Part shown: positions 32,369-47,835 of the stretch, piece by piece | Position numbering within the stretch: the first letter of the stretch is position 1 | Layout: each line of letters begins with the position of its first letter | Virus record (IMG/VR): IMGVR_UViG_3300032236_002285 | Coordinates: 186,001 to 250,000 of that record | Reading direction: 5' to 3' (one strand) | DNA: 64,000 nt | Notes under the pieces: generated by a model | What the model saw: the letters and a program-made list of their open reading frames with translations, nothing else | Database searches by the model: none | Told to the model about the DNA's origin: nothing | Program-made: the position numbers and the translations under genes

Positions 32369-32457
32369 ATTTGGTAGAATTAAAACTTTTTACTAATTTT
32401 GTATAAAATAAGAACAAAAATAACAAAAGAGACAATAACTTTTTAATATATAAAGAA

Positions 32458-32565
32458 ATGAGAACAAATAATACACATAAACATTTTAGTAAATCGAATA
32501 AGTGGTTTAGCAACCAGTTCGGTACTGAAAGTGTATTGCTCTCAAATAAGATGTTAAAAGTCTAA
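32458..32565 (+). CDS. attenuator leader peptide 1 (His/Phe/Trp)
   Basis: MRTNNTHKHFSKSNKWFSNQFGTESVLLSNKMLKV; between promoter 32370-32401 and terminator. Confidence 0.75.
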   Translation: MRTNNTHKHFSKSNKWFSNQFGTESVLLSNKMLKV

Positions 32566-32584
32566 TTTTAGATAAACAATATTC

Positions 32585-32620
32585 AAAAGTCCGAACTTCA
32601 AAAAAGTTCGGACTTTTTTG
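32585..32620 (+). terminator. attenuator terminator 1
   Basis: AAAAGTCCGAACTT / AAGTTCGGACTTTT followed by T run. Confidence 0.9.
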
Positions 32621-32628
32621 TTTTATAT

Positions 32629-32714
32629 GGTGTCGTTATTGTTAACGGAGAGTCGAAAGACGAGCATCTGGCTCTGTGAAAGCCAGGGTACGGGTTCAAA
32701 TCCCGTACGACACC
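32629..32714 (+). tRNA. tRNA-His(GUG) with G-1:C73 and a hairpin insertion in the D-loop
   Basis: Loop CT-GTG-AA; 8-bp acceptor; GTC-GAAA-GAC in D-loop. Confidence 0.75.
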
Positions 32715-32720
32715 CAAGAA

Positions 32721-32796
32721 GGAACCTAAGCTAATCAGGTGAAAGCACTGGACTGAAAATCCAGGGAGCCCGGATCGTTACCGGGAGGTTCCACCA
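32721..32796 (+). tRNA. tRNA-Phe(GAA)
   Basis: CTGGA-CTGAAAA-TCCAG; CCA encoded; atypical T-loop ATCGTTA. Confidence 0.85.
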
Positions 32797-32804
32797 AAAT
32801 AAAT

Positions 32805-32878
32805 GGTGTATGTAGCTCAATCGGTAGAGCGTCGGTTTGTGGAGCCGAAGGTAGCGGGATCGTAACCCGTCATTCACC
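32805..32878 (+). tRNA. tRNA-His(GUG)
   Basis: TCGGT-TTGTGGA-GCCGA; G-1 and C73. Confidence 0.85.
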
Positions 32879-32883
32879 CAAAA

Positions 32884-32955
32884 GGAGACTTAGCTGAGAC
32901 GGTTTAGCGTTTGGTTGAAGCCCAAAAGAGGTCGGTTCGATTCCGGCAGTCTCCA
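32884..32955 (+). tRNA. tRNA-Phe(GAA)
   Basis: TTTGG-TTGAAGC-CCAAA. Confidence 0.8.
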
Positions 32956-32961
32956 CAACAT

Positions 32962-33032
32962 ACGTCATACAGACAAGGTGTCGGTCAGGTCTCCAAAACC
33001 TCGACGGTGGGGTTCGATTCCTCAATGGCGTG
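32962..33032 (+). tRNA. tRNA-Trp(CCA)
   Basis: AGGT-CTCCAAA-ACCT; G73. Confidence 0.8.
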
Positions 33033-33038
33033 CTAAAT

Positions 33039-33110
33039 ACGGGTATGGTGTAATGGCTAACATTTTGGTCTCCAAAACCAAAGATCTTGATTCGAATTCA
33101 GGTACCCGTG
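33039..33110 (+). tRNA. tRNA-Trp(CCA)
   Basis: TTGGT-CTCCAAA-ACCAA; G73. Confidence 0.85.
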
Positions 33111-33174
33111 CTAAAAGGTTCGTGTCTTTTTTTGATGTTTCGGACTTAATATATAGAATAAATAAGTTTTATAT

Positions 33175-33717
33175 ATGAAAGAGGAAATATTAAAGTTAAG
33201 AAGTGAAGGTAAGACTTTTAATGAAATAAAAGAAATACTAAAATGTTCAAAATCTACAATATCTTACCATTGTAGTGATGAACAAAAAGAAAAATCTAGA
33301 AATAGAACTAGAAAAAGAAGAGAGAATTTAATTCACTCTAAACTTGAAAGTTTTATCTATAGAAAAGAAAAAAATGTAAAAGAAGGAATAAGAAAGTTTC
33401 AAAAAACTGACTCAAATTCTAAAGGAAGGGTTAATAGTAATATTAAAACAACATTTAATTGGGTTGATGTTTTGAATAAGTTTGGTGAAAATACATATTG
33501 TTATTTGTCTGGAGAGAAAATTAACCTATATGAAGATAACTACAACTTTGACCATATTATACCAGTTAGTAAAAATGGTAGTAATAGTTTAGAAAACTTA
33601 GGAATTCTACACGAAAAAGTAAATAGAATGAAATCTGACTTATCACCAGAAGAATTAATAGAATGGTGTAAAAAGATTTTAGAGTTTAATAATTATAAAA
33701 TAGAAAAATTAGATTAA
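33175..33717 (+). mobile_element. HTH-HNH endonuclease inserted in tRNA array
   Basis: DHIIPVSKNGSNSLENLGILHEKVNRMKSD. Confidence 0.85.
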
Positions 33718-33791
33718 GAGTATGAAAACTAAATTGAAATATAAACGCTAGGCAACGATTCGAGTCACGGATCGTTGCCCTCAACAACAAT

Positions 33792-33864
33792 GATTCCGTA
33801 GCTCAATTGGTGGAGCTTCCGGCTTTTAACCGGAAGGATGTGAGTTCGAACCTCACCGGAATCA
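33792..33864 (+). tRNA. tRNA-Lys(UUU)
   Basis: TCCGG-CTTTTAA-CCGGA. Confidence 0.9.
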
Positions 33865-33871
33865 CTAAAAT

Positions 33872-33958
33872 GGTTCTGTCGCTTAGCGGCTATAGCAACT
33901 GGCTTTTAACCAGTAGAGATAATGTTCTCAACCGTGGGTTCGAGTCCCACCAGGACCA
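33872..33958 (+). tRNA. tRNA-Lys(UUU) with long variable arm
   Basis: ACTGG-CTTTTAA-CCAGT then GAGA-taatgt-TCTC arm. Confidence 0.8.
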
Positions 33959-33966
33959 CTAAAAAC

Positions 33967-34050
33967 ACTCCTGTCGCTCAGAGGTCGAGAGCAACTGGCT
34001 TTTAACCAGTAGACGCAAGTCCATCGTAGGTTCGAATCCTACCAGGAGTA
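33967..34050 (+). tRNA. tRNA-Lys(UUU) with long variable arm
   Basis: ACTGG-CTTTTAA-CCAGT then GAC-GCAA-GTC arm. Confidence 0.8.
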
Positions 34051-34054
34051 CTAA

Positions 34055-34137
34055 CGATTCGTCGCATAGTGGCTATTGCACCTGACTCTTAATCAGGCGA
34101 AGAAATTCAATCGTGGGTTCGAGTCCCACCGGGTCGA
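34055..34137 (+). tRNA. tRNA-Lys(CUU) with long variable arm
   Basis: CCTGA-CTCTTAA-TCAGG then GAA-gaaa-TTC arm. Confidence 0.8.
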
Positions 34138-34145
34138 CAAAAAAT

Positions 34146-34251
34146 AGTCAAGTGGCGAAAAGGCGAGACGCATAAGAGTTAATCTTTTGGGGTAGACCGA
34201 AGAACCGCGAAAAAGAAGGTTCCCATACAGGTTCGAGTCCTGTCTTGACTA
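34146..34251 (+). tRNA. atypical tRNA-Leu(UAA)-like gene with very long variable region
   Basis: AGTCAAG/CTTGACT acceptor, A73, Leu-like D arm, weak anticodon arm GT-TAA-TC, ~35 nt variable region. Confidence 0.55.
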
Positions 34252-34260
34252 CAAAAATAT

Positions 34261-34404
34261 GGAGAGAGTAGCTCAGTTGGTTAGAGCACGTATTCATTCT
34301 CTGACAAGGATTCTCTGATTATGGTCAACATAATTAGTAGTGATGTTAAGAGATACTTCGGTCTGTTAAACCCGTGGTCGTAGGTTCGAGTCCTACCTCT
34401 CTCC
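34261..34404 (+). tRNA. tRNA-Asn(GUU) interrupted by ~69 nt structured insert
   Basis: Removing 34291-34359 restores CGGGT-CTGTTAA-ACCCG; extra G-1:C73 pair. Confidence 0.7.
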
Positions 34405-34432
34405 CAAATATTAGATTATTAAAAAAATAAAA

Positions 34433-35065
34433 ATGGAAATAAAATTAGAAAGTACTTACAAAGGAACAAGGATTCTTTTTAAGGACAGCGCTAAAAATAA
34501 AAGAAAGTTACTAAATAGCATGATTGATATTTTAGAATCATATGGTTATCAGGAAATAATGATACCTATTATTCAAAAACAAGAAACATTTCAGTCAAAA
34601 GTTGGTGATGAAAACAGAAATATGATGTTTAACTTCAAAGACAGAGGTGATAGAGATTTGTGTTTATCTCCAGAGTACACGGCAATTGTTCAACAATTAT
34701 CAAGTGATAAAATGAAATATGATAAAGATGTAAAAATGTTTTATATCGGTGAATGTTTCAGAGGAGAAAATACACAATCTGGAAGATGGAGACAATTTAC
34801 ACAATTTGGAGTTGAAGTTATAAATCCAAGTAAAGATTATACTGATGAAATGGTTGAAATTGCCAGTAAACTAATTGAGTTAGTTACAAAAAATTATGAA
34901 GTAAATCTGGAAACTACAAGAGGACTTGACTACTACAAAGGTGGAAAAGGATTTGAAATTGCTTGTCCCGAATTAGGATCATCTAAGCAAATTTGTGGAG
35001 GTGGTTCATATGATGGTGGTATTGGATTTGCTGTTGGTGTAGATAGATTACTATTATGTAAATAA
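34433..35065 (+). CDS. minimal histidyl-tRNA synthetase-like catalytic core (no anticodon-binding domain)
   Basis: Motif 1 GYQEIMIPII, LSPEYTA, motif 2 FRGENTQSGRWRQFTQFGVE, GLDYY, motif 3 GGGSYD-GGIGFAVGVDRL; only 210 aa. Confidence 0.8.
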   Translation: MEIKLESTYKGTRILFKDSAKNKRKLLNSMIDILESYGYQEIMIPIIQKQETFQSKVGDENRNMMFNFKDRGDRDLCLSPEYTAIVQQLSSDKMKYDKDVKMFYIGECFRGENTQSGRWRQFTQFGVEVINPSKDYTDEMVEIASKLIELVTKNYEVNLETTRGLDYYKGGKGFEIACPELGSSKQICGGGSYDGGIGFAVGVDRLLLCK

Positions 35066-35074
35066 AAATAAATT

Positions 35075-35202
35075 GGGGATGTAGCTCAGTGGTAGAGAAA
35101 ACTATCTCTTTTGAAAATTTACCTCATAAGAGTGTTGATTGAGAGAGTTACTTCGTATATTTTGAAATTATAAGGTCGTGGGTTCGAATCCCACCATCCC
35201 CA
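35075..35202 (+). tRNA. tRNA (anticodon probably UGA) interrupted by ~55-60 nt structured insert
   Basis: GGGGATG/CATCCCC acceptor, canonical D and T arms, insert ending TTACTTCG; anticodon assignment uncertain. Confidence 0.6.
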
Positions 35203-35281
35203 CAAAAAAGATTTGGTAAATCAATAAAAAAGATTTACTTTTGTAAAAACAAAGAAAAGAAAATTAATATATAATAAAGTT

Positions 35282-35359
35282 ATGAAAACAATTATGCTTA
35301 CATCGAAGTCGTCAAGTAGTCGCTCGTCAAAACCGAGTGAGGTTCGATCGTATTCATAA
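35282..35359 (+). CDS. attenuator leader peptide 2 (Ser/Arg)
   Basis: MKTIMLTSKSSSSRSSKPSEVRSYS; 10 Ser and 2 Arg in 25 aa; promoter 35212-35243. Confidence 0.85.
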   Translation: MKTIMLTSKSSSSRSSKPSEVRSYS

Positions 35360-35382
35360 TATTCGTATAAAGATATTTTATG

Positions 35383-35415
35383 AAACCCTCGAACTTAATG
35401 TTTGAGGGTTTTTTT
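35383..35415 (+). terminator. attenuator terminator 2
   Basis: AAACCCTCGAAC-ttaat-GTTTGAGGGTTT followed by T run. Confidence 0.9.
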
Positions 35416-35426
35416 GTTTTATATAT

Positions 35427-35501
35427 GGTTCTATAGTTTAAATGGATAAAACACTCGGCTACGAACCGAGAGACGTGAAGGTTCGAATCCTTCTGGAACT
35501 A
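35427..35501 (+). tRNA. tRNA-Arg(ACG)
   Basis: CTCGG-CTACGAA-CCGAG. Confidence 0.9.
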
Positions 35502-35507
35502 CAAATT

Positions 35508-35598
35508 GGAGAAGTCAACCGAAATTGGTATCGGCCTAGTCTTGAAAACTAGTCATCGGCGATGAGTTGGTGTGTCGGTTCGAGTCCGACCTTCTCCG
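35508..35598 (+). tRNA. tRNA-Ser(UGA)
   Basis: CTAGT-CTTGAAA-ACTAG, long V arm, G73. Confidence 0.9.
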
Positions 35599-35603
35599 CA
35601 ACC

Positions 35604-35689
35604 GGAAGGAGTCCGAATGGACGAGGAACTTGTCTTGAAAACAAGCGGCTGTAAAAGGTTTGGGGGTTCGATTCCCTCTTCTTCCGCCA
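35604..35689 (+). tRNA. tRNA-Ser(UGA)
   Basis: CTTGT-CTTGAAA-ACAAG, G73, CCA. Confidence 0.9.
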
Positions 35690-35691
35690 AT

Positions 35692-35777
35692 GGAGAGTAA
35701 AGTAGCCAGGGTGCTACCACCGCCTGCTAAGCGAGTGGCCCATTAATTTGGGTGTGATTCGAGTTCACTGCTCTCCG
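35692..35777 (+). tRNA. tRNA-Ser(GCU)
   Basis: CGC-CTGCTAA-GCG, long V arm, G73. Confidence 0.85.
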
Positions 35778-35789
35778 CAAAAGATAACT

Positions 35790-35876
35790 GGAGAGTTGTC
35801 CGAGTGGTTTATGGAGCACGCTTGGAAAGCGTGTGTACTCGAAAGGGTACCGAAGGTTCGAATCCTTCACTCTCCG
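35790..35876 (+). tRNA. tRNA-Ser(GGA)
   Basis: CACGC-TTGGAAA-GCGTG, long V arm, G73. Confidence 0.9.
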
Positions 35877-35891
35877 CAAAAAAATTATATT

Positions 35892-36194
35892 ATGGATACA
35901 AGATATTTGACAAGACCAACATCATTTGAAACTACATTAGCTATTCTACAAGAATTGCTAAGTGAAAGATTATCACCGGAATGGAGGAGAATTTGGGTGC
36001 AAGGGTCTAATTCTGGTAGAACAAGATTCTGCTTTACTATATTTCCCAATACTGGAACATATACGATGAGATTTCATGATGTTGGTTCGTTTAGACAATT
36101 TAGAACCGATGGTGAATTAGAATCTGAATTTGAGCTATTAAATAGATTTATTACTTCTTTATCTGAAGGTGTATTAAAAGACATAATTATCTGA
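35892..36194 (+). CDS. hypothetical protein
   Basis: Start reassigned to ATG 35892; the upstream extension in the ORF track overlaps tRNAs. Confidence 0.55.
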   Translation: MDTRYLTRPTSFETTLAILQELLSERLSPEWRRIWVQGSNSGRTRFCFTIFPNTGTYTMRFHDVGSFRQFRTDGELESEFELLNRFITSLSEGVLKDIII

Positions 36195-36292
36195 AATTAA
36201 GAAAGGCTTTACTAATATATAGATTTATGAAAATTTTATCTATTTTAGTAAAGCCTTTAATTATGTATGTTAATTGGAGAATTAAATCTAGG

Positions 36293-37801
36293 TTAACTAA
36301 CCATTGATATCATAAACCAAGATCCTCCTCCATTTTTAAGAATTGTTATTGAACCATAATTACTATTTATGGTTTTTGCACCAGTTGAACCATCAATAGT
36401 TTCACCTAAATGTGGAGTTATAGTAATATTATTAGAACTTGCATTACCCGCTTCGTCTTTTATAATAACTATTTTACCATCTGTTAAAGTAGCAACACTT
36501 GCTAATGTTATACTAACAGATGTAGCAGTAGTATCTACCGGCCAATACTCTGGTTGAATTGATGGTAGTGCTAGAGGTGTTAATATAAAGCCAGATGGTG
36601 CTGAGATTGATGGATTAACAATAGGTCCGCCACTAACACCTGAAACACCTGAAGTACCGGATGAACCAGATGATCCGGAAACACCAGTTGATCCAATTTT
36701 ACCATCGTAATTCCAACTTATAGTATAAATATCTTCATCTATCAAAGTTACATTTGCTGGAGTAACCGATGATGCTGAACCTGATATTGTAAGATATGAA
36801 TAACCACCTGATACATTTTTAGCAACACTACCTCCTGTATTTTTGTTAATGGTATAGATACCTATAGGATCATTTGCTCCAAATCTTTTCAATTGAATAT
36901 AAGCCACTCTTCCTCTAAAAACTTGGTTGTATAAATCATCTAATAAATAATAATAGTCTGTTCCAACATAATCAAGTTGACCTATTGTTATTTGAGTTAA
37001 TGTTGTTACGTCAGTTGTATCAGTGTGAAAATGGTTAGGGTTATAAAGAGAACTTGAATACTTCCATCTACCTGAAAGTGCAGCACCATCATTACCACTT
37101 ACTCCTGATGAACCGGATGAACCCGATACACCACTTGTGCCTGAACTACCTGATGTGCCTGAACTACCAGATGAACCTGATGAACCTGATGAGCCAGACT
37201 GACCCATAGTTACCCAACTAATTGAATAGTTTTTACCACCTATTGCCATTCCATTTGATGAAACCTTAGTACAGTTAAAATTCCAAGAAGAACCCATATC
37301 TAAACCATTATTAACTTGGTAAATAACATAGTTATTAGCAGCATCGATCTGAGTTATCTTCATATATCCTTGATTTGGATAAGAAGTTAAAAAACTTCCT
37401 AAAGATGCTAACCAACTTGTGGCATCACCGCTTTCACTATAATAGTTTATATTAACATTATTACTTACTTGAGAAAAATCTGTATTACCTAAATTATATT
37501 GACCATTAATAGAATTGCTACCATAAACCCATCTTAGTGTATTAGAGCCATCAGCGCCACTTAAACCCGAAGTTCCTGATGAACCATTAGGACCAGTAGC
37601 ACCAACATGACCTGAGGTACCTGATGAACCTGATGAGCCAGATGACCCACTTCCACCACCACCTGAACCTATTACGGTAACATTACCTGATGTATCTTTT
37701 TGTTTAAGTACTCCGTCTAGATCTAGACCCATTAAAATACCTGATGACGGAGTTGCTGCTCCGGACATATCAATATAAGTAGAAAGTGAAATTAAACTCA
37801 T
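36293..37801 (-). CDS. Ser/Gly-repeat fibre-like (tail fibre/decoration) protein
   Basis: Three blocks of SGSSG/SGTSG/SGVSG repeats; TAATATATA at 37826-37834. Confidence 0.7.
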   Translation of the reverse strand: MSLISLSTYIDMSGAATPSSGILMGLDLDGVLKQKDTSGNVTVIGSGGGGSGSSGSSGSSGTSGHVGATGPNGSSGTSGLSGADGSNTLRWVYGSNSINGQYNLGNTDFSQVSNNVNINYYSESGDATSWLASLGSFLTSYPNQGYMKITQIDAANNYVIYQVNNGLDMGSSWNFNCTKVSSNGMAIGGKNYSISWVTMGQSGSSGSSGSSGSSGTSGSSGTSGVSGSSGSSGVSGNDGAALSGRWKYSSSLYNPNHFHTDTTDVTTLTQITIGQLDYVGTDYYYLLDDLYNQVFRGRVAYIQLKRFGANDPIGIYTINKNTGGSVAKNVSGGYSYLTISGSASSVTPANVTLIDEDIYTISWNYDGKIGSTGVSGSSGSSGTSGVSGVSGGPIVNPSISAPSGFILTPLALPSIQPEYWPVDTTATSVSITLASVATLTDGKIVIIKDEAGNASSNNITITPHLGETIDGSTGAKTINSNYGSITILKNGGGSWFMISMVS

Positions 37802-37870
37802 CTATAATAATTTTTTTTATTACTCTATATATTATTTTGTTAAATGGCTTTTATATTTTATATTTGTGGT

Positions 37871-38272
37871 ATGGGACATTGTATATCAGTATATCTAATG
37901 AATAAATCAGAGTTAAGAGACGAAAAGATTAGCTCTATACTAGATAATAAAGAAAAAAGTAAACAAATAAAATGGACTGAGCTACCAAAAGGTATTTTAG
38001 CAACTACTTATATTCCTAATGTAAGAGAGTTTGGTAAAGATAAAACAATTGCTAAAATATCAACTGACTACTTTGGTGGTAGTGGTTACCAAGAAGCAAA
38101 ATTATTTATTAATAATAAAAAAGTCTATAACGAATCGGATGAACAAGTAAATTTTGGTATCCGCCCAATCAATGATGTATTGAAAATGATGGGTATTGTT
38201 GCAAATAGTGGCATGGATGAATTTGATACAATCAACCTAAGTAATTACAGAAGTAACGAAGATTTCAAATGA
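37871..38272 (+). CDS. hypothetical protein with RDEKISSIL motif near N-terminus
   Basis: ORF after TATATTTG. Confidence 0.6.
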   Translation: MGHCISVYLMNKSELRDEKISSILDNKEKSKQIKWTELPKGILATTYIPNVREFGKDKTIAKISTDYFGGSGYQEAKLFINNKKVYNESDEQVNFGIRPINDVLKMMGIVANSGMDEFDTINLSNYRSNEDFK

Positions 38273-38427: not shown

Positions 38428-38445
38428 ACAAAGTAAATTAGTAAT

Positions 38446-39516: not shown

Positions 39517-39518
39517 AA

Positions 39519-40352: not shown

Positions 40353-40408
40353 AGTGTATATATTAAAACTTTTGTTATTATTAAAGTATAAAATAATAAA
40401 ATATAATT

Positions 40409-40963: not shown

Positions 40964-40971
40964 AATATTAA

Positions 40972-42660
40972 ATGATATCAGTATTAGTAGTAAACTTAAA
41001 TAATTTAGAATTTACAAAAAATTGTGTTAATGATTTAATGTTACAAGATTGTGAATTCAATCTAACAATTATTGATCAAAATAGTTCAGAAGAAGGAACT
41101 AAAGAATACTTTTCAACACTACCTTCAAATATAGAATTTATACAGAATGGTCAAAACACACATCTAAATCAACTTTGGAATTGGTTTGTAATGAAATCAA
41201 ATACACCATACATATGTTTATTAAACAATGATGTTAGAATTGCTCCTAATTTTTTATCATCAGCAATTCAAGTATTTGAGAAAGAACCAAATGTTGGTTT
41301 TGTTAACCATGTTTCAAATAATAAAGATTATCAAGAATGGTCTAATACGTTAGATTATAAAATAATTGAAACTCCTTATAGACAAGGATGGGATCCAATT
41401 TTTAGAAAAGAGTGTTATAATCAAATACCTCAAGAGTTATCTTTCTTTTATGGAGATGACTACATTTATTCTAAATTATATTCATCAGGAATGAAAGGTG
41501 CTTATGTGTTAAATTCACCTATGATTCACTTTGAAAGAAGTACAACAGTTGGAAAAGGAGGACAAAGAGATGCTTCACCTGATAATTTATATTTTCATCA
41601 ATTAGATTTGGATTATAAAAATATGTCTTTTGTGGAAGAATTAAGTAAATGGAAACCTGAATTTTTAACTTTAAAAAGTAAAAACACAAGAACTTATATA
41701 ACACACGTTACTAGAGATTACTTAGAAGTAGCTCTTAATTTAGCAAAATCAGTTAGATTATTTTCTAACTTACCTTTATTGGTTTATTGTATAAATTTAC
41801 AAGAAGAAGATAAACAAAGATTTGATGAATATGAAAATGTTCAACTTAGAAATGTTGATTTGGATATTTCTGAACGAACATCTGAAGATTACACATCTGT
41901 TGATTCTGGTAACTTTTATATAAATAGATATAGTGCTAGAATTTATAATATTTTATGTGCTAAGACTATTGCTATGGAAATGGCTTTAGAAGAAGGTTGG
42001 GATGAGGTTTGTTATTTAGACTCCGATTGTTTAGCAACGCCTTTAGTTGATGAATTATTTGACTGGATGTCTATTATAACTGACTATCCTATAGCTACAC
42101 AGGGTATTCATGATTATATGATTTGGTTTGAAAATGGTATTGAACTTGGAAATCCTTTTGCTGGTGGATCTTGGCCTAATGTTGATAATAAACTTTGCTT
42201 AGAATGGCCTTTGATGAGTTTCTTAGAAGTTGATGAAAATCAAAGAGGTTCTTATAGAACAACCGGTATAATGTTGATGAACCAGGACTGTTTACCTTTT
42301 ATAAAAACTTGGAGAGAATTTTGTTTTATTTTACCTAAATTAGTTAATATAAGAAAGTATGCTACTTATCACGAAGAAACCATTTATAATGTACTTTCTT
42401 GGAAAAAAACAAATCAAGGGTTTCCACTTTGTTATGTTAATATAGGCGAAGGCTTAGAAACTGTAAAACATTTTTATTCTGATGATGCGGTCGAGGGTAA
42501 ATTAAGATGGGATGATAATGATAATTCAAAAAACTTTTATAAAATTCCAGATAATAAAAGAAACTCTAAAGTTTTACATGGTGAAAAAAGAACATCAGAA
42601 GTTGATTTAATTTTAGACTACCTAGTAGAATTAAAAAATAATAAATATTTTAATGATTAG
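40972..42660 (+). CDS. two-domain glycosyltransferase (GT2 plus second GT-A-like domain)
   Basis: ICLLNNDV and CYLDSD DxD-type motifs. Confidence 0.75.
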   Translation: MISVLVVNLNNLEFTKNCVNDLMLQDCEFNLTIIDQNSSEEGTKEYFSTLPSNIEFIQNGQNTHLNQLWNWFVMKSNTPYICLLNNDVRIAPNFLSSAIQVFEKEPNVGFVNHVSNNKDYQEWSNTLDYKIIETPYRQGWDPIFRKECYNQIPQELSFFYGDDYIYSKLYSSGMKGAYVLNSPMIHFERSTTVGKGGQRDASPDNLYFHQLDLDYKNMSFVEELSKWKPEFLTLKSKNTRTYITHVTRDYLEVALNLAKSVRLFSNLPLLVYCINLQEEDKQRFDEYENVQLRNVDLDISERTSEDYTSVDSGNFYINRYSARIYNILCAKTIAMEMALEEGWDEVCYLDSDCLATPLVDELFDWMSIITDYPIATQGIHDYMIWFENGIELGNPFAGGSWPNVDNKLCLEWPLMSFLEVDENQRGSYRTTGIMLMNQDCLPFIKTWREFCFILPKLVNIRKYATYHEETIYNVLSWKKTNQGFPLCYVNIGEGLETVKHFYSDDAVEGKLRWDDNDNSKNFYKIPDNKRNSKVLHGEKRTSEVDLILDYLVELKNNKYFND

Positions 42661-44239
42661 ATTCGAGCAACCATCAAATGAAAATCCATTTGGAAAAATC
42701 TTAGTAAATATAGATTCAAATTACGATCATTCTTTATTTAAACTACCTTTTACTTTTAAGGTGGTAAATGATATAGATAAACAAGTAAAATGGCAGACTA
42801 ATGATATGCAAAATGGTTGGTGGGCAACTTATGTAGAGCCTTGTAACTCAGAAGCCTTTTTACTTGACTCAATGGATAATATATTATATAGTTGGAAGTG
42901 GGACACAGATAAACATGGTGATAAATCTCATAAATTCTTTTTAGATTGGTGTAAAAAAAATAAAGGGTCTAAAGGTATAGCTATTGGAACACATAATGGT
43001 ACAACAGGTGAATGGGTAGTTCCTGTTATGGATAATCTAATCGAGGCTTATTTAGTAGAAGCATCAGATAAACAATATAGCGAATTAGTTGAAAATTATA
43101 AAAGTAGTTCAAATGCTCATACTATAAAAAGCCTAATAACTTCTGATGGATCGGAAATTGAATTTTTTGAAAGTGAGGATGGATTTACAAATTCAACTTC
43201 AAAAGAACATGTTTTAAAATTTCATAATGATGTTAACTCAGTTATTAAAAAATCAATATCATTGAATGATTTAATAATTCAGTGCGGATTACAAAATGAT
43301 TTAAAATGGTTACATTTAGATGTTGAAGGTATTGATGATGAATTAATACTTAGTCTAGATGATACTAAAGTTAAATTGCCGGAAATAATTATCTACGAAA
43401 GTCTTAATCTAAGTGATGAAAGGAAAAAGAATGTCATTGAGTGGTTAGAATCAAAAAATTACCAATGTGAAGAATCTGGATGGAATACAATAGCTATTTT
43501 GAATAAATTAGATTTATCCTTATTAGTACATACTTGTGATTCTTATGAACAATTTTGGGGTGGTATGTTTTATACTTTAGATTCATACTGGGATTATAAT
43601 ATTCCTGTTTATTTTGCAAATGAAGAAAAAGAAATGTCTGATATAGTTATTGACTGCAAAGGAACACCATATAAACCAGATACAAGAATAAAGCAAATAT
43701 TAACTGGTAAAACTGATAAAAATGGATTCTCAACTAGATTTATTGAAGCAGTTAAACAAATACCAACTAAATATGTTCTTTATATACAAGAAGATATGTG
43801 GTTAAAAAGAGGAATAGATAATAAAGTATTTTCAGATATAATTTCTTTTATGGATGAAGTAAATGCTGACTCTGTTAAAATTCACGCAAAGTTATTTTAT
43901 TATGATAATTATCTTTTAGAACCTACTGAACATTTTATTGATAATCAAAGACTTTTAAAATATTTAGATTGTGACGCTTTATTAACACATAATGCTACAA
44001 TATGGAGAAAAGATTATATTTTAGAACATCAAATACCCGGTGAGGATCCTTGGGTAAATGAAATATCAGGTAGTAGAAGAATGTGCTCGAAAAAACACAA
44101 TCACTATCACTATAATATACATTGGTATTGTCAACCAGGAACAGTTGATAAAGGTGAACCATCTCAAGAATTTGTTGTCTATGCTCATATAGTTGATGAA
44201 ATGAAAAGTATGGAATTAAAATTAAATTTGAAAAAATAA
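42653..44239 (+). CDS. FkbM-family methyltransferase fused to glycosyltransferase-like domain
   Basis: IAIGTHNG...LVEAS...LHLDVEGID; C-terminal VLYIQEDMW. Confidence 0.7.
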   Translation: MIRFEQPSNENPFGKILVNIDSNYDHSLFKLPFTFKVVNDIDKQVKWQTNDMQNGWWATYVEPCNSEAFLLDSMDNILYSWKWDTDKHGDKSHKFFLDWCKKNKGSKGIAIGTHNGTTGEWVVPVMDNLIEAYLVEASDKQYSELVENYKSSSNAHTIKSLITSDGSEIEFFESEDGFTNSTSKEHVLKFHNDVNSVIKKSISLNDLIIQCGLQNDLKWLHLDVEGIDDELILSLDDTKVKLPEIIIYESLNLSDERKKNVIEWLESKNYQCEESGWNTIAILNKLDLSLLVHTCDSYEQFWGGMFYTLDSYWDYNIPVYFANEEKEMSDIVIDCKGTPYKPDTRIKQILTGKTDKNGFSTRFIEAVKQIPTKYVLYIQEDMWLKRGIDNKVFSDIISFMDEVNADSVKIHAKLFYYDNYLLEPTEHFIDNQRLLKYLDCDALLTHNATIWRKDYILEHQIPGEDPWVNEISGSRRMCSKKHNHYHYNIHWYCQPGTVDKGEPSQEFVVYAHIVDEMKSMELKLNLKK

Positions 44240-44997
44240 TGAAACCCAAAGTTAGTGTAATAATACCTTGTTATAATTATGATAAGTATATTGAACAATG
44301 TCTTATGTCTGTTGTTTTGCAAAATCGAGATTTTAATATTGAGGTTTTAATAGGTGATGACAATTCAACAGATAAGAGTATTGAAATTATTGAAAGATTT
44401 AGTAGGTATTATAGATATGATAATTTAAAATATAAAATATACTCACATGATAAAAATTTAGGTGAAATTAATAATACAAAATTTCTTTTAGATAATTGTG
44501 AAGGTGAATATATTGCTTATTTAGATGCTGATGATTACTGGACAGATCCAAATAAATTAAAAAATCAATTAGAGTTTTTAGATAATAATAAAGACTACTC
44601 ACTTTGTATAACAGGCTATATTCAATTAAAAAATGGTGTTGATTATAACCCAAATGTTAATTTTAAAAGCTGGCTTTGCCCTAAAGATATAAATAATATG
44701 AATTCTGATGCTCTGTCTAAAGGTAATATAGTTGGTTCATCATCTTCTAGAGTATTCAGAAATTATAAAGATTTAGTTAAAGATTACTTTTATGATTTTC
44801 CTTATTCAGATTGGGTAATGAATTTTGAATTATCTCTAAAAGGTAAAATAGGTTATTTAAATTTTCCAAGTTATGTTTATCGAATGCATGATAATTCTTT
44901 ATCTACAAAAGATTTACAAGCTGAGAATAAAGAAGAACTATATAATAAAAGAGTTAGTATTTTAAAGTCTGAGCTAAATAAATATCTAAATAATTAA
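44239..44997 (+). CDS. GT2 glycosyltransferase
   Basis: VSVIIPCYN, GDDNSTD, YIAYLDADDYW. Confidence 0.9.
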   Translation: MKPKVSVIIPCYNYDKYIEQCLMSVVLQNRDFNIEVLIGDDNSTDKSIEIIERFSRYYRYDNLKYKIYSHDKNLGEINNTKFLLDNCEGEYIAYLDADDYWTDPNKLKNQLEFLDNNKDYSLCITGYIQLKNGVDYNPNVNFKSWLCPKDINNMNSDALSKGNIVGSSSSRVFRNYKDLVKDYFYDFPYSDWVMNFELSLKGKIGYLNFPSYVYRMHDNSLSTKDLQAENKEELYNKRVSILKSELNKYLNN

Positions 44998-45073
44998 AAA
45001 TTTTATTGTATATTTGTAAAAAATAAGAAAAGGGACTAAACTTTTTTAATATATACACATACAATAAAAACAT

Positions 45074-45145
45074 TGCGGGGTAGAGAAGAGGCATCTCGCC
45101 AGGCTCATAACCTGGAGGTCAGTGGTTCGAATCCACTCCCCGCTA
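45074..45145 (+). tRNA. initiator tRNA-fMet(CAU)
   Basis: 1:72 mismatch, CCAGG-CTCATAA-CCTGG. Confidence 0.85.
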
Positions 45146-45309
45146 CAAATAGAAAGACAGGACAAATATCTGATCAGCCCCAAGAAGGTAGGGTAGAGTA
45201 CTCTGAACAAGTCTTTCTAAGGAATTAAAAAAATATTAAAAATATTTGGTGAAATAAAAATTTCACCGTATATTTGTAAAACAATTAAGAAATTATAAAA
45301 ACTAAAACA

Positions 45310-45387
45310 ATGACAACTATTACTAACATAGCGTATTATTATGAGGGAGAGCGTAGCTCAAACGTCAGACTAATGTCTATGTCGTAA
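45310..45387 (+). CDS. attenuator leader peptide 3 (Tyr/Glu)
   Basis: MTTITNIAYYYEGERSSNVRLMSMS; promoter 45245-45276. Confidence 0.85.
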   Translation: MTTITNIAYYYEGERSSNVRLMSMS

Positions 45388-45409
45388 TGGTTTCATTATG
45401 ATATTTTCT

Positions 45410-45440
45410 AACCCAGTCTGACTTTCAGACTGGGTTTTTT
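45410..45440 (+). terminator. attenuator terminator 3
   Basis: AACCCAGTCTG-acttt-CAGACTGGGTT followed by T run. Confidence 0.9.
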
Positions 45441-45455
45441 GTTTTAAAATAAATT

Positions 45456-45540
45456 GGGAGTATAACGTCAGCGGTGTGTAAGCCGCCCCTAATCAAAGAG
45501 ACGTATAGAGGTAACTTGTGTGCAAATCCAGGTACTCCCA
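45456..45540 (+). tRNA. degenerate tRNA-like element (no resolvable anticodon arm)
   Basis: Perfect GGGAGTA/TACTCCC acceptor and TGCAAAT T-loop-like segment; middle does not fold canonically. Confidence 0.4.
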
Positions 45541-45546
45541 CAAAAT

Positions 45547-45618
45547 GGTCCTGTCGACTAATGGTCAGGTTACAAGACTTTCAATCTTGAGATGCGGGTT
45601 CGATTCCCGTCAGGACTA
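45547..45618 (+). tRNA. tRNA-Glu(UUC)
   Basis: CAAGA-CTTTCAA-TCTTG. Confidence 0.9.
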
Positions 45619-45625
45619 CAAATAT

Positions 45626-45711
45626 GCTACGGTATGCAAACCGGAATAAGCGACCAGACTTTCAATCTGGACATCGAAAGATGTGTGCGGGTTCGAGCCC
45701 CGTCCGTAGTA
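45626..45711 (+). tRNA. tRNA-Glu(UUC) with long variable arm
   Basis: CCAGA-CTTTCAA-TCTGG then ACATC-GAAA-GATGT. Confidence 0.8.
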
Positions 45712-45718
45712 CAAATAA

Positions 45719-45802
45719 GGGAGAGCGCCAACGTTGGAGAGTTGGGCTTGTCTGTAAAACAAGTGGCTTACGCCTGAGTGGGTTCGATTCCCACCTCTCC
45801 CA
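45719..45802 (+). tRNA. tRNA-Tyr(GUA)
   Basis: CTTGT-CTGTAAA-ACAAG, V arm. Confidence 0.85.
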
Positions 45803-46103
45803 CAAAAAATTAAACAAAAAAAATGAAAAGTTGAAAGTGAAAGATGATAATTATGTTGGTAGTTATCTTTTTATCAAAACCAGTAATGTCACAGAACATT
45901 ATTAAATACCAACAAAAAACAAAAATTGATTTGAGATTAAATAAGTCAATTGAAAACCAAAAGGTTCTTTTTAAGAAAACTAAATTAGAATCTGATAACT
46001 TTGAAATTAAAATTAGTCACGATTAGCTGATTAATAAAAAGTTTAGAATCAGGTTTACTTTATGTTTAGACATGAAAGAATTTTTTACCAAAGAGTAAAA
46101 AAT

Positions 46104-46176
46104 GATGCTATCGACTAATGGTTTAGGTCGCCATCCTCTCAAGGTGGAAATACGGGTTCGAATCCCGTTAGCATTA
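46104..46176 (+). tRNA. tRNA-Glu(CUC)
   Basis: CCATC-CTCTCAA-GGTGG. Confidence 0.9.
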
Positions 46177-46241
46177 CAAAAAATTAAACAAATGTTTGGA
46201 TATTAAAAAAGTATCCTTATCTTTGTAAAAGAATAAAAAAT

Positions 46242-46313
46242 GGTCCCGTCGTCTAATGGTTAGGACAATGCCCTTTCACGGCATAGATTTCGGTTCAAAT
46301 CCGTGCGGGACTA
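46242..46313 (+). tRNA. tRNA-Glu(UUC)
   Basis: ATGCC-CTTTCAC-GGCAT. Confidence 0.9.
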
Positions 46314-46402
46314 CAATAAAAACAGATAACTCCGGTATGGTCTCAATCATTACTTAGAACCGGGCTTTGGAAAGTTACAAGTTGAGATTCTGTTTTTTAT
46401 AT

Positions 46403-46485
46403 TGGAAGGTGGCCGAGTGGTTAATGGCGCTTGACTGTAAATCAAGTCTCTTGCGAGTACGGGGGTTCGAATCCCTCCCTTCCAA
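46403..46485 (+). tRNA. tRNA-Tyr(GUA)
   Basis: CTTGA-CTGTAAA-TCAAG, V arm. Confidence 0.9.
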
Positions 46486-46550
46486 CAAAAATAAAAAAAA
46501 TTAAAAGGGAAGACAAAACTTTTTATATATACATTAATATAATTAAAACG

Positions 46551-46631
46551 ATGAAAAATTTAACTAACATATCAACAGCAATCATAGGAGGCGGCGCGGG
46601 AGCGAATGTCACTGGCTGGACTATGTTATAA
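46551..46631 (+). CDS. attenuator leader peptide 4 (Gly/Ala/Ile)
   Basis: MKNLTNISTAIIGGGAGANVTGWTML. Confidence 0.85.
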   Translation: MKNLTNISTAIIGGGAGANVTGWTML

Positions 46632-46655
46632 TCTTTCATCAAAAGAATTAAACGT

Positions 46656-46688
46656 AACCCAGTCAGTGAAAATTGACTGGGTTTTTTT
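46656..46688 (+). terminator. attenuator terminator 4
   Basis: AACCCAGTCAGT-GAAA-ATTGACTGGGTT followed by T run. Confidence 0.9.
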
Positions 46689-46692
46689 ATTT

Positions 46693-46776
46693 CGGCAGGT
46701 ACCGATGGTGTCTTATACACACTATAACCGTAGCGGGAAGTTGAAAACGTGGGTTCGAATCCCACCCTGCCGACCA
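46693..46776 (+). tRNA. D-arm-deficient tRNA-like gene, anticodon UAU (Ile-like)
   Basis: CGGCAGG/CCTGCCG acceptor, A73-CCA, canonical T arm, GGTGT-CTTATAC-ACACT, long V region, almost no D arm. Confidence 0.5.
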
Positions 46777-46836
46777 ACTGAGAAAACAGTAAATCGTGAG
46801 CCAACACTAAAACCATCCCACCAGGATGTAAAACTC

Positions 46837-46908
46837 GCGGGTATCGTATAGTGGCTATTACTCCTTCCTTCCAAGTAGGAGACGTCGGTTCGATTCCGGC
46901 TACCCGCT
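46837..46908 (+). tRNA. tRNA-Gly(UCC)
   Basis: Loop CT-TCC-AA; GCG acceptor, U73. Confidence 0.9.
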
Positions 46909-46916
46909 CAAATTTT

Positions 46917-46991
46917 GGGGTCACATGTACCAAGGCTAGGCGATGATGCTTTGCAAGCATCGTGTGGTGAGTTCGATTCTCACTGGCTCCA
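46917..46991 (+). tRNA. tRNA-Ala(UGC)
   Basis: GATGC-TTTGCAA-GCATC; G3:U70. Confidence 0.85.
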
Positions 46992-47010
46992 CAAAAAATG
47001 AATAGTAAAA

Positions 47011-47178
47011 ATGACTATATTCAAATATTTAGTAGATGGAAAACTTTACTTCTTGTACAATGGAGTAAATGGATATATTGCTATACCATTTGAGCATAGT
47101 GGAAATACTATATCAAATCCAAATCTTGATGAATTTGTACCAGTGAAAATGGGCAATGGTTCTGATGGATTTGTATAA
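47011..47178 (+). CDS. small hypothetical protein (55 aa) inside tRNA array
   Basis: Hand translation MTIFKYLVDGKLYFLYNGVNGYIAIPFEHSGNTISNPNLDEFVPVKMGNGSDGFV. Confidence 0.5.
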   Translation: MTIFKYLVDGKLYFLYNGVNGYIAIPFEHSGNTISNPNLDEFVPVKMGNGSDGFV

Positions 47179-47181
47179 AAT

Positions 47182-47256
47182 GCGAAAGTCGTATAGTGGC
47201 TATTATATCAGCTTGCCAAGCTGAGGACGGCAGTTCGATTCTGCTCTTTCGCTCCA
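47182..47256 (+). tRNA. tRNA-Gly(GCC)
   Basis: TCAGC-TTGCCAA-GCTGA; U73-CCA. Confidence 0.9.
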
Positions 47257-47260
47257 ATAT

Positions 47261-47298
47261 GCCGGATGATCCACCGTTGAATCGCGGTGCCGGCTCCA
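47261..47298 (+). ncRNA. tRNA minihelix-like element (acceptor plus T-like arm, ends UCCA)
   Basis: GCCGG/CCGGC and CACCG/CGGTG stems, TTGAATCG loop. Confidence 0.5.
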
Positions 47299-47372
47299 GG
47301 GGAATTAGCTCATTTGGCTAGAGCGCTTGTCTGGCAGACAAGAGGTGACGAGTTCAAATCTCGTATTCTCCA
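47299..47372 (+). tRNA. tRNA-Ala(GGC)
   Basis: CTTGT-CTGGCAG-ACAAG; G3:U70. Confidence 0.9.
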
Positions 47373-47379
47373 CTAATAA

Positions 47380-47459
47380 GCGGGTGTCGTATAGTGGCAC
47401 GTAGTAGATTATGCCGGTCTTCCAAACCGGAGATGTGAGTTCGATTCTCATCACCCGCT
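47380..47459 (+). tRNA. tRNA-Gly(UCC) with enlarged D-loop
   Basis: CCGGT-CTTCCAA-ACCGG; U73. Confidence 0.85.
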
Positions 47460-47461
47460 CA

Positions 47462-47605
47462 AAGATAGTAGTAATGTACGAGTGTTACTTCGTATTTCCA
47501 ACGACTAGTTCAGGTTCGAATCCTGGGTTCCGCTCAAATGATAATATGCGGGATTAGTGTAACGGTAGCACAGTAAAAACACACTCAGCAAATTTTCTCT
47601 ATCTT
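47462..47605 (+). tRNA. circularly permuted tRNA (Gly-type acceptor) flanked by the split insert module
   Basis: 3' half (anticodon, T arm, GTTCCGC-T) at 47491-47534 precedes 5' half (GCGGGAT plus D arm) at 47548-47574; flanks pair AAGATAG/CTATCTT and GAGTGT/ACACTC. Confidence 0.7.
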
Positions 47606-47609
47606 ATTA

Positions 47610-47679
47610 GGGCCAGATGCCAACGGCAGGTCAACTCGCTTGCACCGAGATTGTTTGGGTTCGATTCCCACTGTGTCCA
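47610..47679 (+). tRNA. degenerate tRNA-Ala(UGC)-like gene
   Basis: CTCG-CTTGCAC-CGAG; G3:U70-like pair; bulged acceptor. Confidence 0.5.
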
Positions 47680-47835
47680 CTATATTTATTTTTCATAGCT
47701 ACCTAAACTTCAATATATTAATTATATATATACCATTAGATTAGATTAAAGAAAGGTTTTTAGACAGTTTAGTATTTTTAGATTAAAGAATGACTTGAAG
47801 TTAGACAATTAACTAAAAAATAACTATGCTAAAAA

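Follow-up and report, generated by a model that had tools for sequence, protein, structure and literature searches.

Codon-matched leader ORFs and terminators in front of the tRNA genes of a huge phage: putative ribosome-mediated attenuators

A huge phage of Bacteroidota places a short leader ORF and an intrinsic terminator in front of each of four groups of its tRNA genes, and the codons of each leader match the tRNAs encoded downstream, such that these tRNAs appear to be made only when ribosomes struggle to read the matching codons. The window analysed is a 64,000-nucleotide stretch of the IMG/VR record IMGVR_UViG_3300032236_002285 (positions 186,001 to 250,000), and all coordinates below are those of the window. 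A preliminary description, made from the sequence alone, had proposed that four tRNA clusters are each governed by a trp/his-type attenuator whose leader is enriched in the amino acids of its own cluster; we could confirm that this arrangement is present, and our analyses support the proposed reading as attenuation. The principle is a classic one in bacteria, but its action on tRNA genes, or in a virus, has to our knowledge not been reported: the preliminary description had left its claim of novelty to be checked against the literature, and the claim survived our full-text searches, which found no earlier description.

Organization of the tRNA units

The tRNA genes of the window all lie on the + strand between 32.6 and 47.7 kb, where ARAGORN with default settings finds 22, and relaxed settings add about seven more that are partly backed by Rfam. 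Four strong hairpins of 12-14 bp (-17.6 to -18.7 kcal/mol), followed by tails of 6-7 T, precede the clusters, and each is itself preceded by a leader ORF of 25-35 codons (L1-L4) that opens at the first ATG of the transcript. A segment in the 3' part of each ORF is complementary to the 5' arm of the terminator, at -11.1 to -19.5 kcal/mol. The first tRNA or tRNA-like gene begins 12, 14, 19 and 9 nt after the stem in the four units, respectively, slightly wider than the 5-16 nt that had initially been given. Bacteroidota-type promoters (TTTG / TAnnTTTG) precede L1-L3, whereas L4, for which an upstream promoter element had also been claimed, has only a conserved AAAAGGGA..TTTTTATATATA box.

In the first unit (all features on the + strand), the promoter comprises TTTG (-33) at 32370 and TAATTTTG (-7) at 32394-32401, and between it and the leader lies a conserved box, AAAAGAGA-N-TTTTTAATATATA (32425-32452), of unknown role, that occurs only three times in the 64 kb, each time before a tRNA unit, and is also present in relatives. 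The L1 ORF (32458-32565, 35 aa) has the sensor codons His7, His9, Phe10, Trp16 and Phe17, and in addition Lys8, Lys12 and Lys15, which the preliminary description had missed, and is conserved in L001, L002 and L010 (handles of this form with three digits denote relatives of the window). Its segment 2 (32516-32526) can pair either with segment 1 (about 32484-32499), over the sensor codons, or with the terminator 5' arm at 32588-32597 (-12.8 kcal/mol). The terminator (32585-32617, -17.6 kcal/mol) has a 14-bp stem followed by TTTTTTGTTTT, and leads into cluster 1 (32630-33111), a His-type tRNA-like gene followed by Phe, His, Phe, Trp and Trp. A fifth unit of a different kind, also missed initially, is located at 33722-33779, and consists of a Lys mini-ORF (33722-33751; 9 codons, 4 of them AAA) and a 12-bp hairpin that starts in its stop codon (33751-33779) and has no T tract. 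The peptide is conserved in five genomes, in which every hairpin has a different sequence. The Lys cluster that follows (33792-34138) has four tRNA-Lys genes, three with a long extra arm, and in L001 and L002 it directly follows cluster 1 with no promoter of its own.

The second unit has its promoter at 35212 (TTTG) and 35236-35243 (TACTTTTG), and its leader (L2, 35282-35359, 25 aa) contains 10 Ser and 2 Arg codons, all 12 of which are readable by the anticodons of the cluster. The antiterminator strand (35340-35355) pairs with 35382-35396, in the 5' arm of the terminator (35382-35412, -18.1 kcal/mol), and cluster 2 (35427-35877) encodes Arg(ACG), Ser(UGA), Ser(UGA), Ser(GCU) and Ser(GGA). In the third unit, with TTTG at 45245 and TATATTTG at 45269-45276, the L3 ORF (45310-45387, 25 aa) has the sensor Tyr-Tyr-Tyr-Glu-Gly-Glu at codons 9-14, and homologues in L003, L004 and L009 keep 3-4 Tyr and 3 Glu. 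Its antiterminator strand (45364-45371) pairs with 45415-45422 (-13.1 kcal/mol) in the terminator (45410-45436, -18.7 kcal/mol). Cluster 3 (45456-45803) begins with a tRNA-like element at 45456, called a tRNA by neither ARAGORN nor Rfam, followed by Glu(UUC), Glu(UUC, long arm) and Tyr(GUA).

In the fourth unit, the conserved box (46503-46531) is not accompanied by a TAnnTTTG motif, and the L4 ORF (46551-46631, 26 aa), with homologues in L003, L004 and L009, has the sensor Ala-Ile-Ile-Gly-Gly-Gly-Ala-Gly-Ala at codons 10-18. The antiterminator strand (46609-46619) pairs with 46659-46669 (-19.5 kcal/mol) in the terminator (46656-46683, -18.0 kcal/mol), and cluster 4 (46693-47679) encodes Ile(UAU)-like, Gly(UCC), Ala(UGC), Gly(GCC), Ala(GGC) and further Gly/Ala-like genes. 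Not every tRNA unit has a leader, since tRNA-Met at 45074 and Glu/Tyr at 46242-46486, which the preliminary description had not mentioned, are fed directly by a promoter. As a negative control, we examined the region of T5 with 25 tRNAs, which has no terminator within 250 nt upstream of a tRNA.

Leader codons track the downstream tRNAs

Whether homologous leaders in related phages would keep the codon-cluster match had been named in advance as a point on which the proposal could fail. The units are conserved in three complete Bacteroidetes phage genomes of 630-735 kb and about ten IMG/VR contigs, and the homologous leaders in diverged relatives keep the match while the rest of the sequence drifts. 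In addition, clusters of different composition carry differently composed leaders: in the relatives, seven Gln codons precede four tRNA-Gln genes, eight Leu, using six codon types, precede five tRNA-Leu isoacceptors, six Lys precede two tRNA-Lys, and an Asn/Leu/Thr/Val/Ile/Met-rich leader precedes a cluster of 21 tRNAs. TAnnTTTG lies within 130 nt upstream of 20/32 leaders, against 10% of random 130-nt windows.

Over 32 non-identical leaders, 331/861 residues (38.4%) belong to the amino acids of the leader's own cluster, against an expectation of 17.7%, and the match holds only in the reading frame of the ORF, with frames +1 and +2 giving 17.5% and 10.0%. Permuting clusters among leaders gave 149 +/- 16 matches, and 0/20000 permutations reached 331; over 14 non-homologous leader types the match was 0.377 against 0.163 +/- 0.027, with 0/100000 permutations as high. 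Of the 331 matching codons, 290 are readable by an anticodon in the cluster, although some tRNAs, e.g., Ser(GGA) and Ala(GGC), have no codon in the leader. Within the window, own-cluster residues number 6/34, 12/24, 5/24 and 8/25 in L1-L4 (binomial P of 0.04, 3e-6, 0.13 and 1.5e-3), and each of the four ranks its own cluster first among 14 cluster types. Taken alone, L1 and L3 are only modestly enriched, and AT-rich DNA holds many short ORFs, which raised the possibility of accidental ORFs beside the terminators of upstream genes, but chance is contradicted by the permutation and frame controls, by conservation in genomes that share only about 70-80% identity over the tRNAs, and by the clean T5 control, and we consider it extremely unlikely.

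Promoter, ORF and terminator together are also the layout of a minimal gene, and the short ORFs might be ordinary small protein genes with their own terminators, with the tRNAs transcribed from other signals. This reading is also very unlikely: only 9-19 nt separate terminator and first tRNA, leaving no room for a promoter, and no promoter motif lies there, as the T tail holds TTTG but lacks the TA and a -33 element. The peptides diverge freely except at the sensor codons, and a 1-nt frameshift between the window and its relatives leaves the 3' part conserved as RNA, not as peptide.

Antiterminator pairing and ribosome position

When the transcript is truncated at the terminator loop, the 5' arm pairs with the 3' end of the ORF (mean z of -2.6, with 24/32 leaders having z below -2). 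The pairing is unit-specific, in that duplexes with the own arm average -11.5 kcal/mol, against -7.1 for non-cognate arms, with 0/20000 permutations as low, and for L4 no non-cognate leader pairs as well. A search of the relatives for covarying stems, suggested at the outset, revealed compensatory changes: in six homologues of L2, 97.6% of cells are paired and two pairs change on both sides, and in L4 a G-C to C-G swap separates the window from its relatives.

Folding of the leaders with and without the segment covered by a ribosome had likewise been proposed beforehand, and masking a ribosome footprint placed the last sensor codon of the four window leaders at the boundary where a stalled ribosome still leaves the antiterminator free. 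In L1 the antiterminator is favoured only while the A site is at codons 6-16, and in L3 the switch falls after Glu14. The mask model is crude and gave no clear OFF state at the stop codon for roughly half of the 32 leaders, and L2 and L4, unlike trp, fold into the antiterminator even without a ribosome. Nevertheless, every sequence-level prediction of the attenuation reading that we could test was borne out.

An alternative is that the terminators block tRNA transcription until a phage or host antiterminator protein, or a modified polymerase, overrides them at a certain stage of infection, the short ORFs not being the sensor. In its favour are the conserved box upstream of three tRNA units, the resemblance of the terminators to each other in sequence, and a similar leader-terminator unit that precedes a small basic protein and an L7/L12 gene without an obvious codon theme. 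However, factor-dependent or timed antitermination does not explain why leader composition tracks cluster composition, and only in the ORF frame, nor why the 3' end of each ORF pairs specifically with its own terminator arm, and we regard it as unlikely.

A model for feedback-controlled tRNA supply

Based on these findings, our best explanation, to which we would assign a probability of roughly 0.8, is that each unit is a ribosome-mediated (leader-peptide) transcription attenuator in front of a polycistronic tRNA operon. The sequence itself shows a Bacteroidota promoter at which host-type RNA polymerase would start, and a first ATG that opens a short ORF whose middle part is packed with codons read by the tRNAs encoded downstream; the events that follow are our inference. 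If those codons are read quickly, the ribosome would run into or past the segment at the 3' end of the ORF, the terminator hairpin would form, and transcription would stop 9-19 nt before the first tRNA gene. If a matching aminoacyl-tRNA is scarce, the ribosome would stall on the sensor codons, and the 3' segment would stay free to pair with the 5' arm of the terminator as an antiterminator, allowing the polymerase to read on into the tRNA genes. No experiment supports the model, and translation of the leaders, pausing and conditional read-through are all inferred, nor did we document coupling of transcription and translation in Bacteroidota. The phage is uncultured and its host unknown. In this view, the products are the very tRNAs that relieve the stall, and each unit is a negative-feedback loop that holds decoding capacity for its own codon set at a set point, channel by channel.

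Leaders favour rare G-ending codons that U34 tRNAs read by wobble (54/129 sensor codons of U34 boxes, or 42%, against 16% expected from genome usage), a preference that would make the sensor more sensitive. The sequence does not say whether the shortage comes from the codon demand of an AT-rich giant phage, from loss of host tRNAs, or from tRNA-cleaving defence systems, and the trigger by anticodon nucleases put forward in the preliminary description is only one possibility. In relatives, the same cassette precedes the phage genes for IleRS (a leader with seven Ile codons), AsnRS (three Asn codons) and non-discriminating AspRS (Asp and Asn codons), which points to a general sensing of aminoacyl-tRNA supply.

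These synthetase units also lend some support to a reading in which the attenuators report amino-acid starvation or general translation stress, as in classic operons, and tRNA output is a by-product, for example of co-regulation with the synthetases, rather than tRNA homeostasis. A stalled ribosome cannot tell missing tRNA from uncharged tRNA, and extra tRNA would not help if the amino acid itself were limiting. That more tRNA does not relieve amino-acid shortage also speaks against this reading, which we consider improbable, while the matching of leaders at the level of codon and isoacceptor, including the six Leu codon types for five isoacceptors, and their preference for wobble-read rare codons both fit sensing of tRNA species.

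Comparison with known systems

The Bacteroid-trp motif (RF01692; PMC2864571) is a candidate cis-regulatory RNA before trp genes in Bacteroidetes. It carries a short Trp-codon ORF, which would be a precedent for attenuation in this phylum, but it is a host element for a biosynthetic operon and did not match the window. T-box riboswitches share the amino-acid-specific read-through of a terminator in response to the state of one tRNA species, but a T-box binds uncharged tRNA directly, without translation, through a specifier codon and the conserved T-box sequence, whereas here there is an ORF with many sensor codons, and no T-box match was found. Phage-encoded tRNAs that compensate for host tRNAs lost to defence nucleases have been described (PMC11555353, PMC12409363), but those papers concern which tRNAs rescue infection, and they were not retrieved in our searches for codon-matched conditional transcription of the tRNA genes.

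In the pheM leader attenuator of the E. coli pheST operon, a gene of the translation apparatus is under ribosome-mediated attenuation by codons of the cognate amino acid, and the IleRS, AsnRS and AspRS units of the relatives are direct analogues, although the units of the window control tRNAs, not a synthetase, and sit in a phage. The leader-peptide attenuators of the enterobacterial trp, his, leu, thr, ilv and pheA operons have a short ORF rich in regulatory codons, an intrinsic terminator, and a mutually exclusive antiterminator built from the 5' arm of the terminator, with ribosome position deciding which forms. L1 also has a 1:2 protector helix over the sensor codons, which L2 and L4 lack, and the use of rare codons recalls the CUA codons of the leu leader. 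No sequence homology to the Rfam leader families was detected, and the genes regulated here are tRNA genes, not biosynthetic enzymes, so the output feeds straight back on the sensor, each leader senses two to seven amino acids at once, and many such units form an array in one viral genome.

Architecture of the tRNA units

The window is AT-rich, with about 30% G+C, and its tRNA genes all lie on the + strand between 32.6 and 47.7 kb, where ARAGORN finds 22 with default settings and where relaxed settings and Rfam add about seven more, several of odd shape. A terminator scan of this strand produced four strong hairpins with T tails, at 32585-32617, 35382-35412, 45410-45436 and 46656-46683, with folding energies of -17.6 to -18.7 kcal/mol. 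A short ORF ends 19-24 nt upstream of each hairpin and starts at the first ATG after the promoter region: L1 at 32458-32565 (35 aa), L2 at 35282-35359 (25 aa), L3 at 45310-45387 (25 aa) and L4 at 46551-46631 (26 aa). The four leader-terminator-tRNA units noticed in the preliminary description are therefore really there. L1-L3 are preceded by the Bacteroidota promoter pattern TTTG ... TAnnTTTG, a motif that lies within 130 nt upstream of 20/32 leaders of the set collected from the window and its relatives, against 10% of random windows. L4 has only a conserved box, AAAAGGGA-N-TTTTTATATATA. This box (AAAAG[GA]GA-N8-12-TTTTT(A)ATATATA) occurs only three times in the 64 kb, at 32425-32452, 45028-45055 and 46503-46531, each time upstream of a tRNA unit, one of which is the leaderless tRNA-Met; it is also present in relatives, and could be a special promoter or a binding site. 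The promoter type, together with a CHU_C type IX secretion domain in a neighbouring ORF, points to a Bacteroidota host.

The first tRNA or tRNA-like gene starts 9-19 nt after the terminator stem, so that no separate promoter fits in between. The possibility that a promoter is hidden in the T tail of the terminator was considered and rejected, since the tail holds TTTG but lacks the TA and a -33 element. Several tRNA-like genes, at 34146-34252, 34262-34405, 35075-35203, 45456-45543, 46693-46776 and 47465-47680, have inserts, a missing D arm or other odd shapes that ARAGORN and Rfam call poorly, and three of them are the first gene after a terminator. Part of the tRNA set is not under attenuation, i.e., tRNA-Met (45074-45146) and a second Glu(UUC)/Tyr(GUA) pair (46242-46486, with a -7 box at 46218-46225) lie directly behind TAnnTTTG promoters, with no leader or terminator. 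As a negative control, a 50-kb region of phage T5 with 25 tRNAs has no terminator within 250 nt upstream of any tRNA.

The Lys tRNAs depart from this pattern. In the relatives, the four Lys tRNAs follow cluster 1 without a promoter, whereas in the window an HNH endonuclease gene (33175-33717) sits inside the His/Phe/Trp-Lys tRNA operon and is absent at that place in two relatives. They are preceded by a conserved 9-codon, Lys-rich mini-ORF, M-K-[TS]-K-x-K-Y-K-x, whose stop codon runs into a stable hairpin with no T tract (window 33722-33779, and in the related loci L001 at 7789, L002 at 8766, L009 at 2323 and L011 at 3507), and which lies 10-25 nt before the first tRNA-Lys. The L001 copy was flagged as the T tract of a minus-strand terminator, but we rejected this reading, since nothing is transcribed on that strand nearby, and ATG, stop, frame and the alternating AAA codons are kept in five genomes while the hairpin sequence is completely different in each. 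It may be a second kind of ribosome-sensing device, although we have no explanation for how it works. Three of the tRNA-Lys genes (33872-33959, 33967-34051 and 34055-34138) and one tRNA-Glu gene (45626-45712) are 84-88 nt long and fold as cloverleaves with an extra 3-5 bp variable arm, a shape normally limited to Leu, Ser and Tyr tRNAs in bacteria; the same lengths occur in the relative L001.

Codon match in the window and its relatives

The leader codons correspond to the tRNAs downstream. L1 has His, His, Phe, Trp and Phe, plus three Lys, before His-like/Phe/His/Phe/Trp/Trp; L2 has ten Ser and two Arg in 25 codons before Arg/Ser/Ser/Ser/Ser; L3 has Tyr-Tyr-Tyr-Glu-Gly-Glu before Glu/Glu/Tyr; and L4 has Ala-Ile-Ile-Gly-Gly-Gly-Ala-Gly-Ala before Ile-like/Gly/Ala/Gly/Ala. 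Binomial P values against the window's proteome are 0.04, 3e-6, 0.13 and 1.5e-3, respectively, and two of the four are therefore weak on their own. All four leaders rank their own cluster first of 14.

The closest records are uncultured giant phages, LR745206 (635 kb), LR756502 (642 kb) and, more distantly, LR756501 (735 kb), and the paper describing them assigns the genomes above 634 kb to Bacteroidetes hosts. A neighbouring ORF (34433-35065), a 210-aa HisRS-like class II core without an anticodon-binding domain that is conserved in 22 viral contigs, was used to retrieve 22 IMG/VR loci, one of which is the window's own 476-kb contig (IMGVR_UViG_3300032236_002285); ten of the 22 had few or no tRNAs nearby and added nothing. 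An objective pipeline, requiring a strong terminator, the longest ATG ORF ending within 70 nt upstream of it, and ARAGORN tRNAs downstream, gave 32 non-identical units. Homologous leaders lacking the codon-cluster match had been named in advance as an outcome that would count against the attenuation reading, but all four window leaders have homologues that keep the sensor residues while the rest drifts. In addition, clusters of other composition carry leaders of matching composition: seven consecutive Gln codons before four tRNA-Gln genes, eight Leu codons of six types before five tRNA-Leu isoacceptors, six Lys codons before two tRNA-Lys genes, a His/Asn/Ile/Trp/Ser-rich leader before that set of tRNAs, and an Asn/Leu/Thr/Val/Ile/Met-rich leader before a 21-tRNA cluster. 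Leaders with unrelated sensor blocks, in the window and in loci L003-L033, share the start M-[KNT]-x-[ILF]-x-N-I (AAC ATA), which suggests one ancestral cassette that was duplicated and re-fitted.

Over the 32 leaders, 331/861 residues (38.4%) belong to the amino-acid set of the leader's own cluster, against 17.7% expected and 17.5% and 10.0% in frames +1 and +2, so that the enrichment is confined to the reading frame of the ORF. Permuting clusters among the 32 leaders gave 149 +/- 16 matches, with 0/20000 permutations as high as the observed 331. Homologous leaders are not independent and the P values from the full set are inflated, a problem addressed by a test of 14 non-homologous leader types, for which the mean match was 0.377 against 0.163 +/- 0.027, with 0/100000 permutations as high. 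Under simple wobble rules, 290/331 matching codons are readable by a cluster anticodon. In boxes read by U34 tRNAs, 54/129 codons (42%) are G-ending, against 16% expected from genome usage, e.g., TCG outnumbers TCA 17 to 11 in leaders, although TCG makes up only 8% of TCA+TCG in the genome. The frame, permutation and conservation controls together reject the reading of the leaders as chance ORFs.

Alternative structure and ribosome position

When the transcript is cut at the terminator loop, the 5' arm pairs with the last codons of the ORF; mean z against shuffled upstream sequence is -2.6, and 24/32 leaders have z below -2. The pairing is specific to each unit, since the 3' end of each ORF pairs with its own arm at -11.5 kcal/mol on average, whereas arms of other units give -7.1, and 0/20000 permutations are as low. 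A search of related huge phages for covarying stems had been proposed as a check, and such changes were found: in six Ser/Arg leaders the seven-pair helix is 97.6% paired, with two pairs changed on both sides, while slid controls give 2-52%, and the Gly leader shows a G-C to C-G swap. The window and its relatives also differ by a 1-nt frameshift just after the Gly/Ala block, and the 3' part is therefore conserved as RNA, not as peptide.

Folding each leader with and without the segment covered by a ribosome, a check proposed at the outset, was carried out by forcing a 28-nt footprint to stay unpaired at each A-site codon. The probability that the terminator arm is held by the antiterminator was 0.70 for L1 up to Trp16, 0.82 for L2 up to Ser16, 0.60 for L3 up to Glu14, and 0.75-0.83 for L4 up to Gly17, and in each case it fell immediately after that codon. 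The switch is thus clear in silico for the four window leaders, but the same crude model gave no clear OFF state in about half of the 32 leaders, so that over the full set the geometry is neither borne out nor contradicted. A single switch-codon metric for all 32 leaders was not robust, and the positional profile is uninformative apart from the drop after the switch. Without a ribosome, L1 (0.31) and L3 (0.07) fold into the terminating state, as a protector (1:2) helix would require, whereas L2 (0.80) and L4 (0.83) do not, a divided outcome that does not settle whether such a helix is part of the design.

Extension to synthetase genes

The screening of 101 strong terminators in 364 kb for the full unit (promoter or box, short stop-to-stop ORF, and arm complementarity) found 23 units, 17 before tRNA clusters and 6 before protein genes. 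NCBIfam identified the protein genes as IleRS, with seven Ile codons in the leader; AsnRS, with three Asn codons; non-discriminating AspRS (two genes), with Asp and Asn codons; and ribosomal protein L7/L12, with no evident codon theme. These cassettes lie in the related giant phage loci L028 (36524-37944), L029 (32899-35254 and 41375-42700), L031 (47214-48640) and L033 (8959-9505, minus strand). The sixth gene encodes a small, very basic protein of 65-67 aa and of unknown family, and a homologous unit occurs in a second genome; its leader-plus-terminator unit (L001 9738-9832, L002 12834-12931, L008 about 8990-9040) has a conserved L-H-T-Y-K but no obvious codon theme. The cassette is thus a general device of these phages for translation-supply genes, with the synthetase cases following classical logic.

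Interpretation

The best-supported mechanism is ribosome-mediated attenuation of tRNA operons, and the interpretation offered in the preliminary description is in that respect supported. In this view, a stall on sensor codons would free the antiterminator and let the polymerase read into the tRNA genes, whose products would then end the stall, a feedback loop on decoding capacity with one loop per codon set. What the sequences themselves demonstrate is the architecture, the codon match, the covariation and the conservation, whereas translation of the leaders, pausing, conditional read-through and the natural trigger are inferences, and read-through under scarcity of the cognate aminoacyl-tRNA was not measured here. 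The earlier suggestion that the units respond to anticodon nucleases is possible. The matched synthetase leaders and the preference for rare codons fit a broader sensing of aminoacyl-tRNA supply during infection by a very large AT-rich phage.

Phage tRNAs are usually discussed as a static gift, either as codon-usage compensation or as replacements for tRNAs destroyed by defence nucleases, but these units suggest that their synthesis is regulated, species by species, by a direct read-out of decoding capacity. A more far-reaching and tentative reading, which we consider somewhat less likely than not, is that giant Bacteroidota phages carry a modular, multi-channel decoding-capacity homeostat built from one evolvable cassette, with a shared M-x-x-[ILF]-x-N-I start, a swappable sensor-codon block and a private antiterminator/terminator pair, that has been copied in front of nearly every tRNA operon and several aminoacyl-tRNA synthetase genes. 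This would let the virus measure, codon family by codon family, what the infected cell can still decode, and then rebuild exactly the missing part of the translation system, including after attack by tRNA-cleaving defence systems; the terminator-less Lys mini-ORF plus hairpin would add a different, still unknown ribosome-sensing mechanism inside an operon. The leaders are short, portable and make sharp predictions, so that how giant phages manage the translation system they carry is now open to testing, and they could also serve as natural, ready-made reporters of the in-cell availability of individual tRNAs.

Comparison with known systems

The preliminary description had asked that its claim of novelty be held against the literature. 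Full-text searches found no report of leader-peptide attenuation of tRNA genes, in phages or in any other organism, although most subscription-journal papers lay outside their reach and an earlier report cannot be excluded; the paper describing the related giant genomes makes no mention of leaders, attenuation or terminators. A T-box riboswitch, with its Stem I specifier loop and conserved T-box sequence in the antiterminator, was sought with Rfam and had no match in 31.5-48.5 kb. The Rfam leader families (His, Trp, Leu, Thr and Phe leaders, and Bacteroid-trp) likewise gave no match at the four leaders at E <= 0.1, the only weak Phe/Leu-leader hits lying on a gene-end terminator at 39.5 kb. 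With leader-peptide transcription attenuators the four units share a short ORF that starts at the first ATG of the transcript, codons in frame that relate to the regulated genes, an intrinsic terminator before the first of those genes (a feature not shared by the Lys mini-ORF unit, which has no T tract), and an alternative helix between the 3' end of the ORF and the terminator's 5' arm that is supported by covariation. They differ from the classic amino-acid operon attenuators (trp, his, leu, thr, ilv and pheA) in that the regulated genes are tRNAs and not enzymes for synthesis of the sensed amino acid, and the classic attenuation mechanism would here work as an autoregulatory loop on the tRNA genes themselves.
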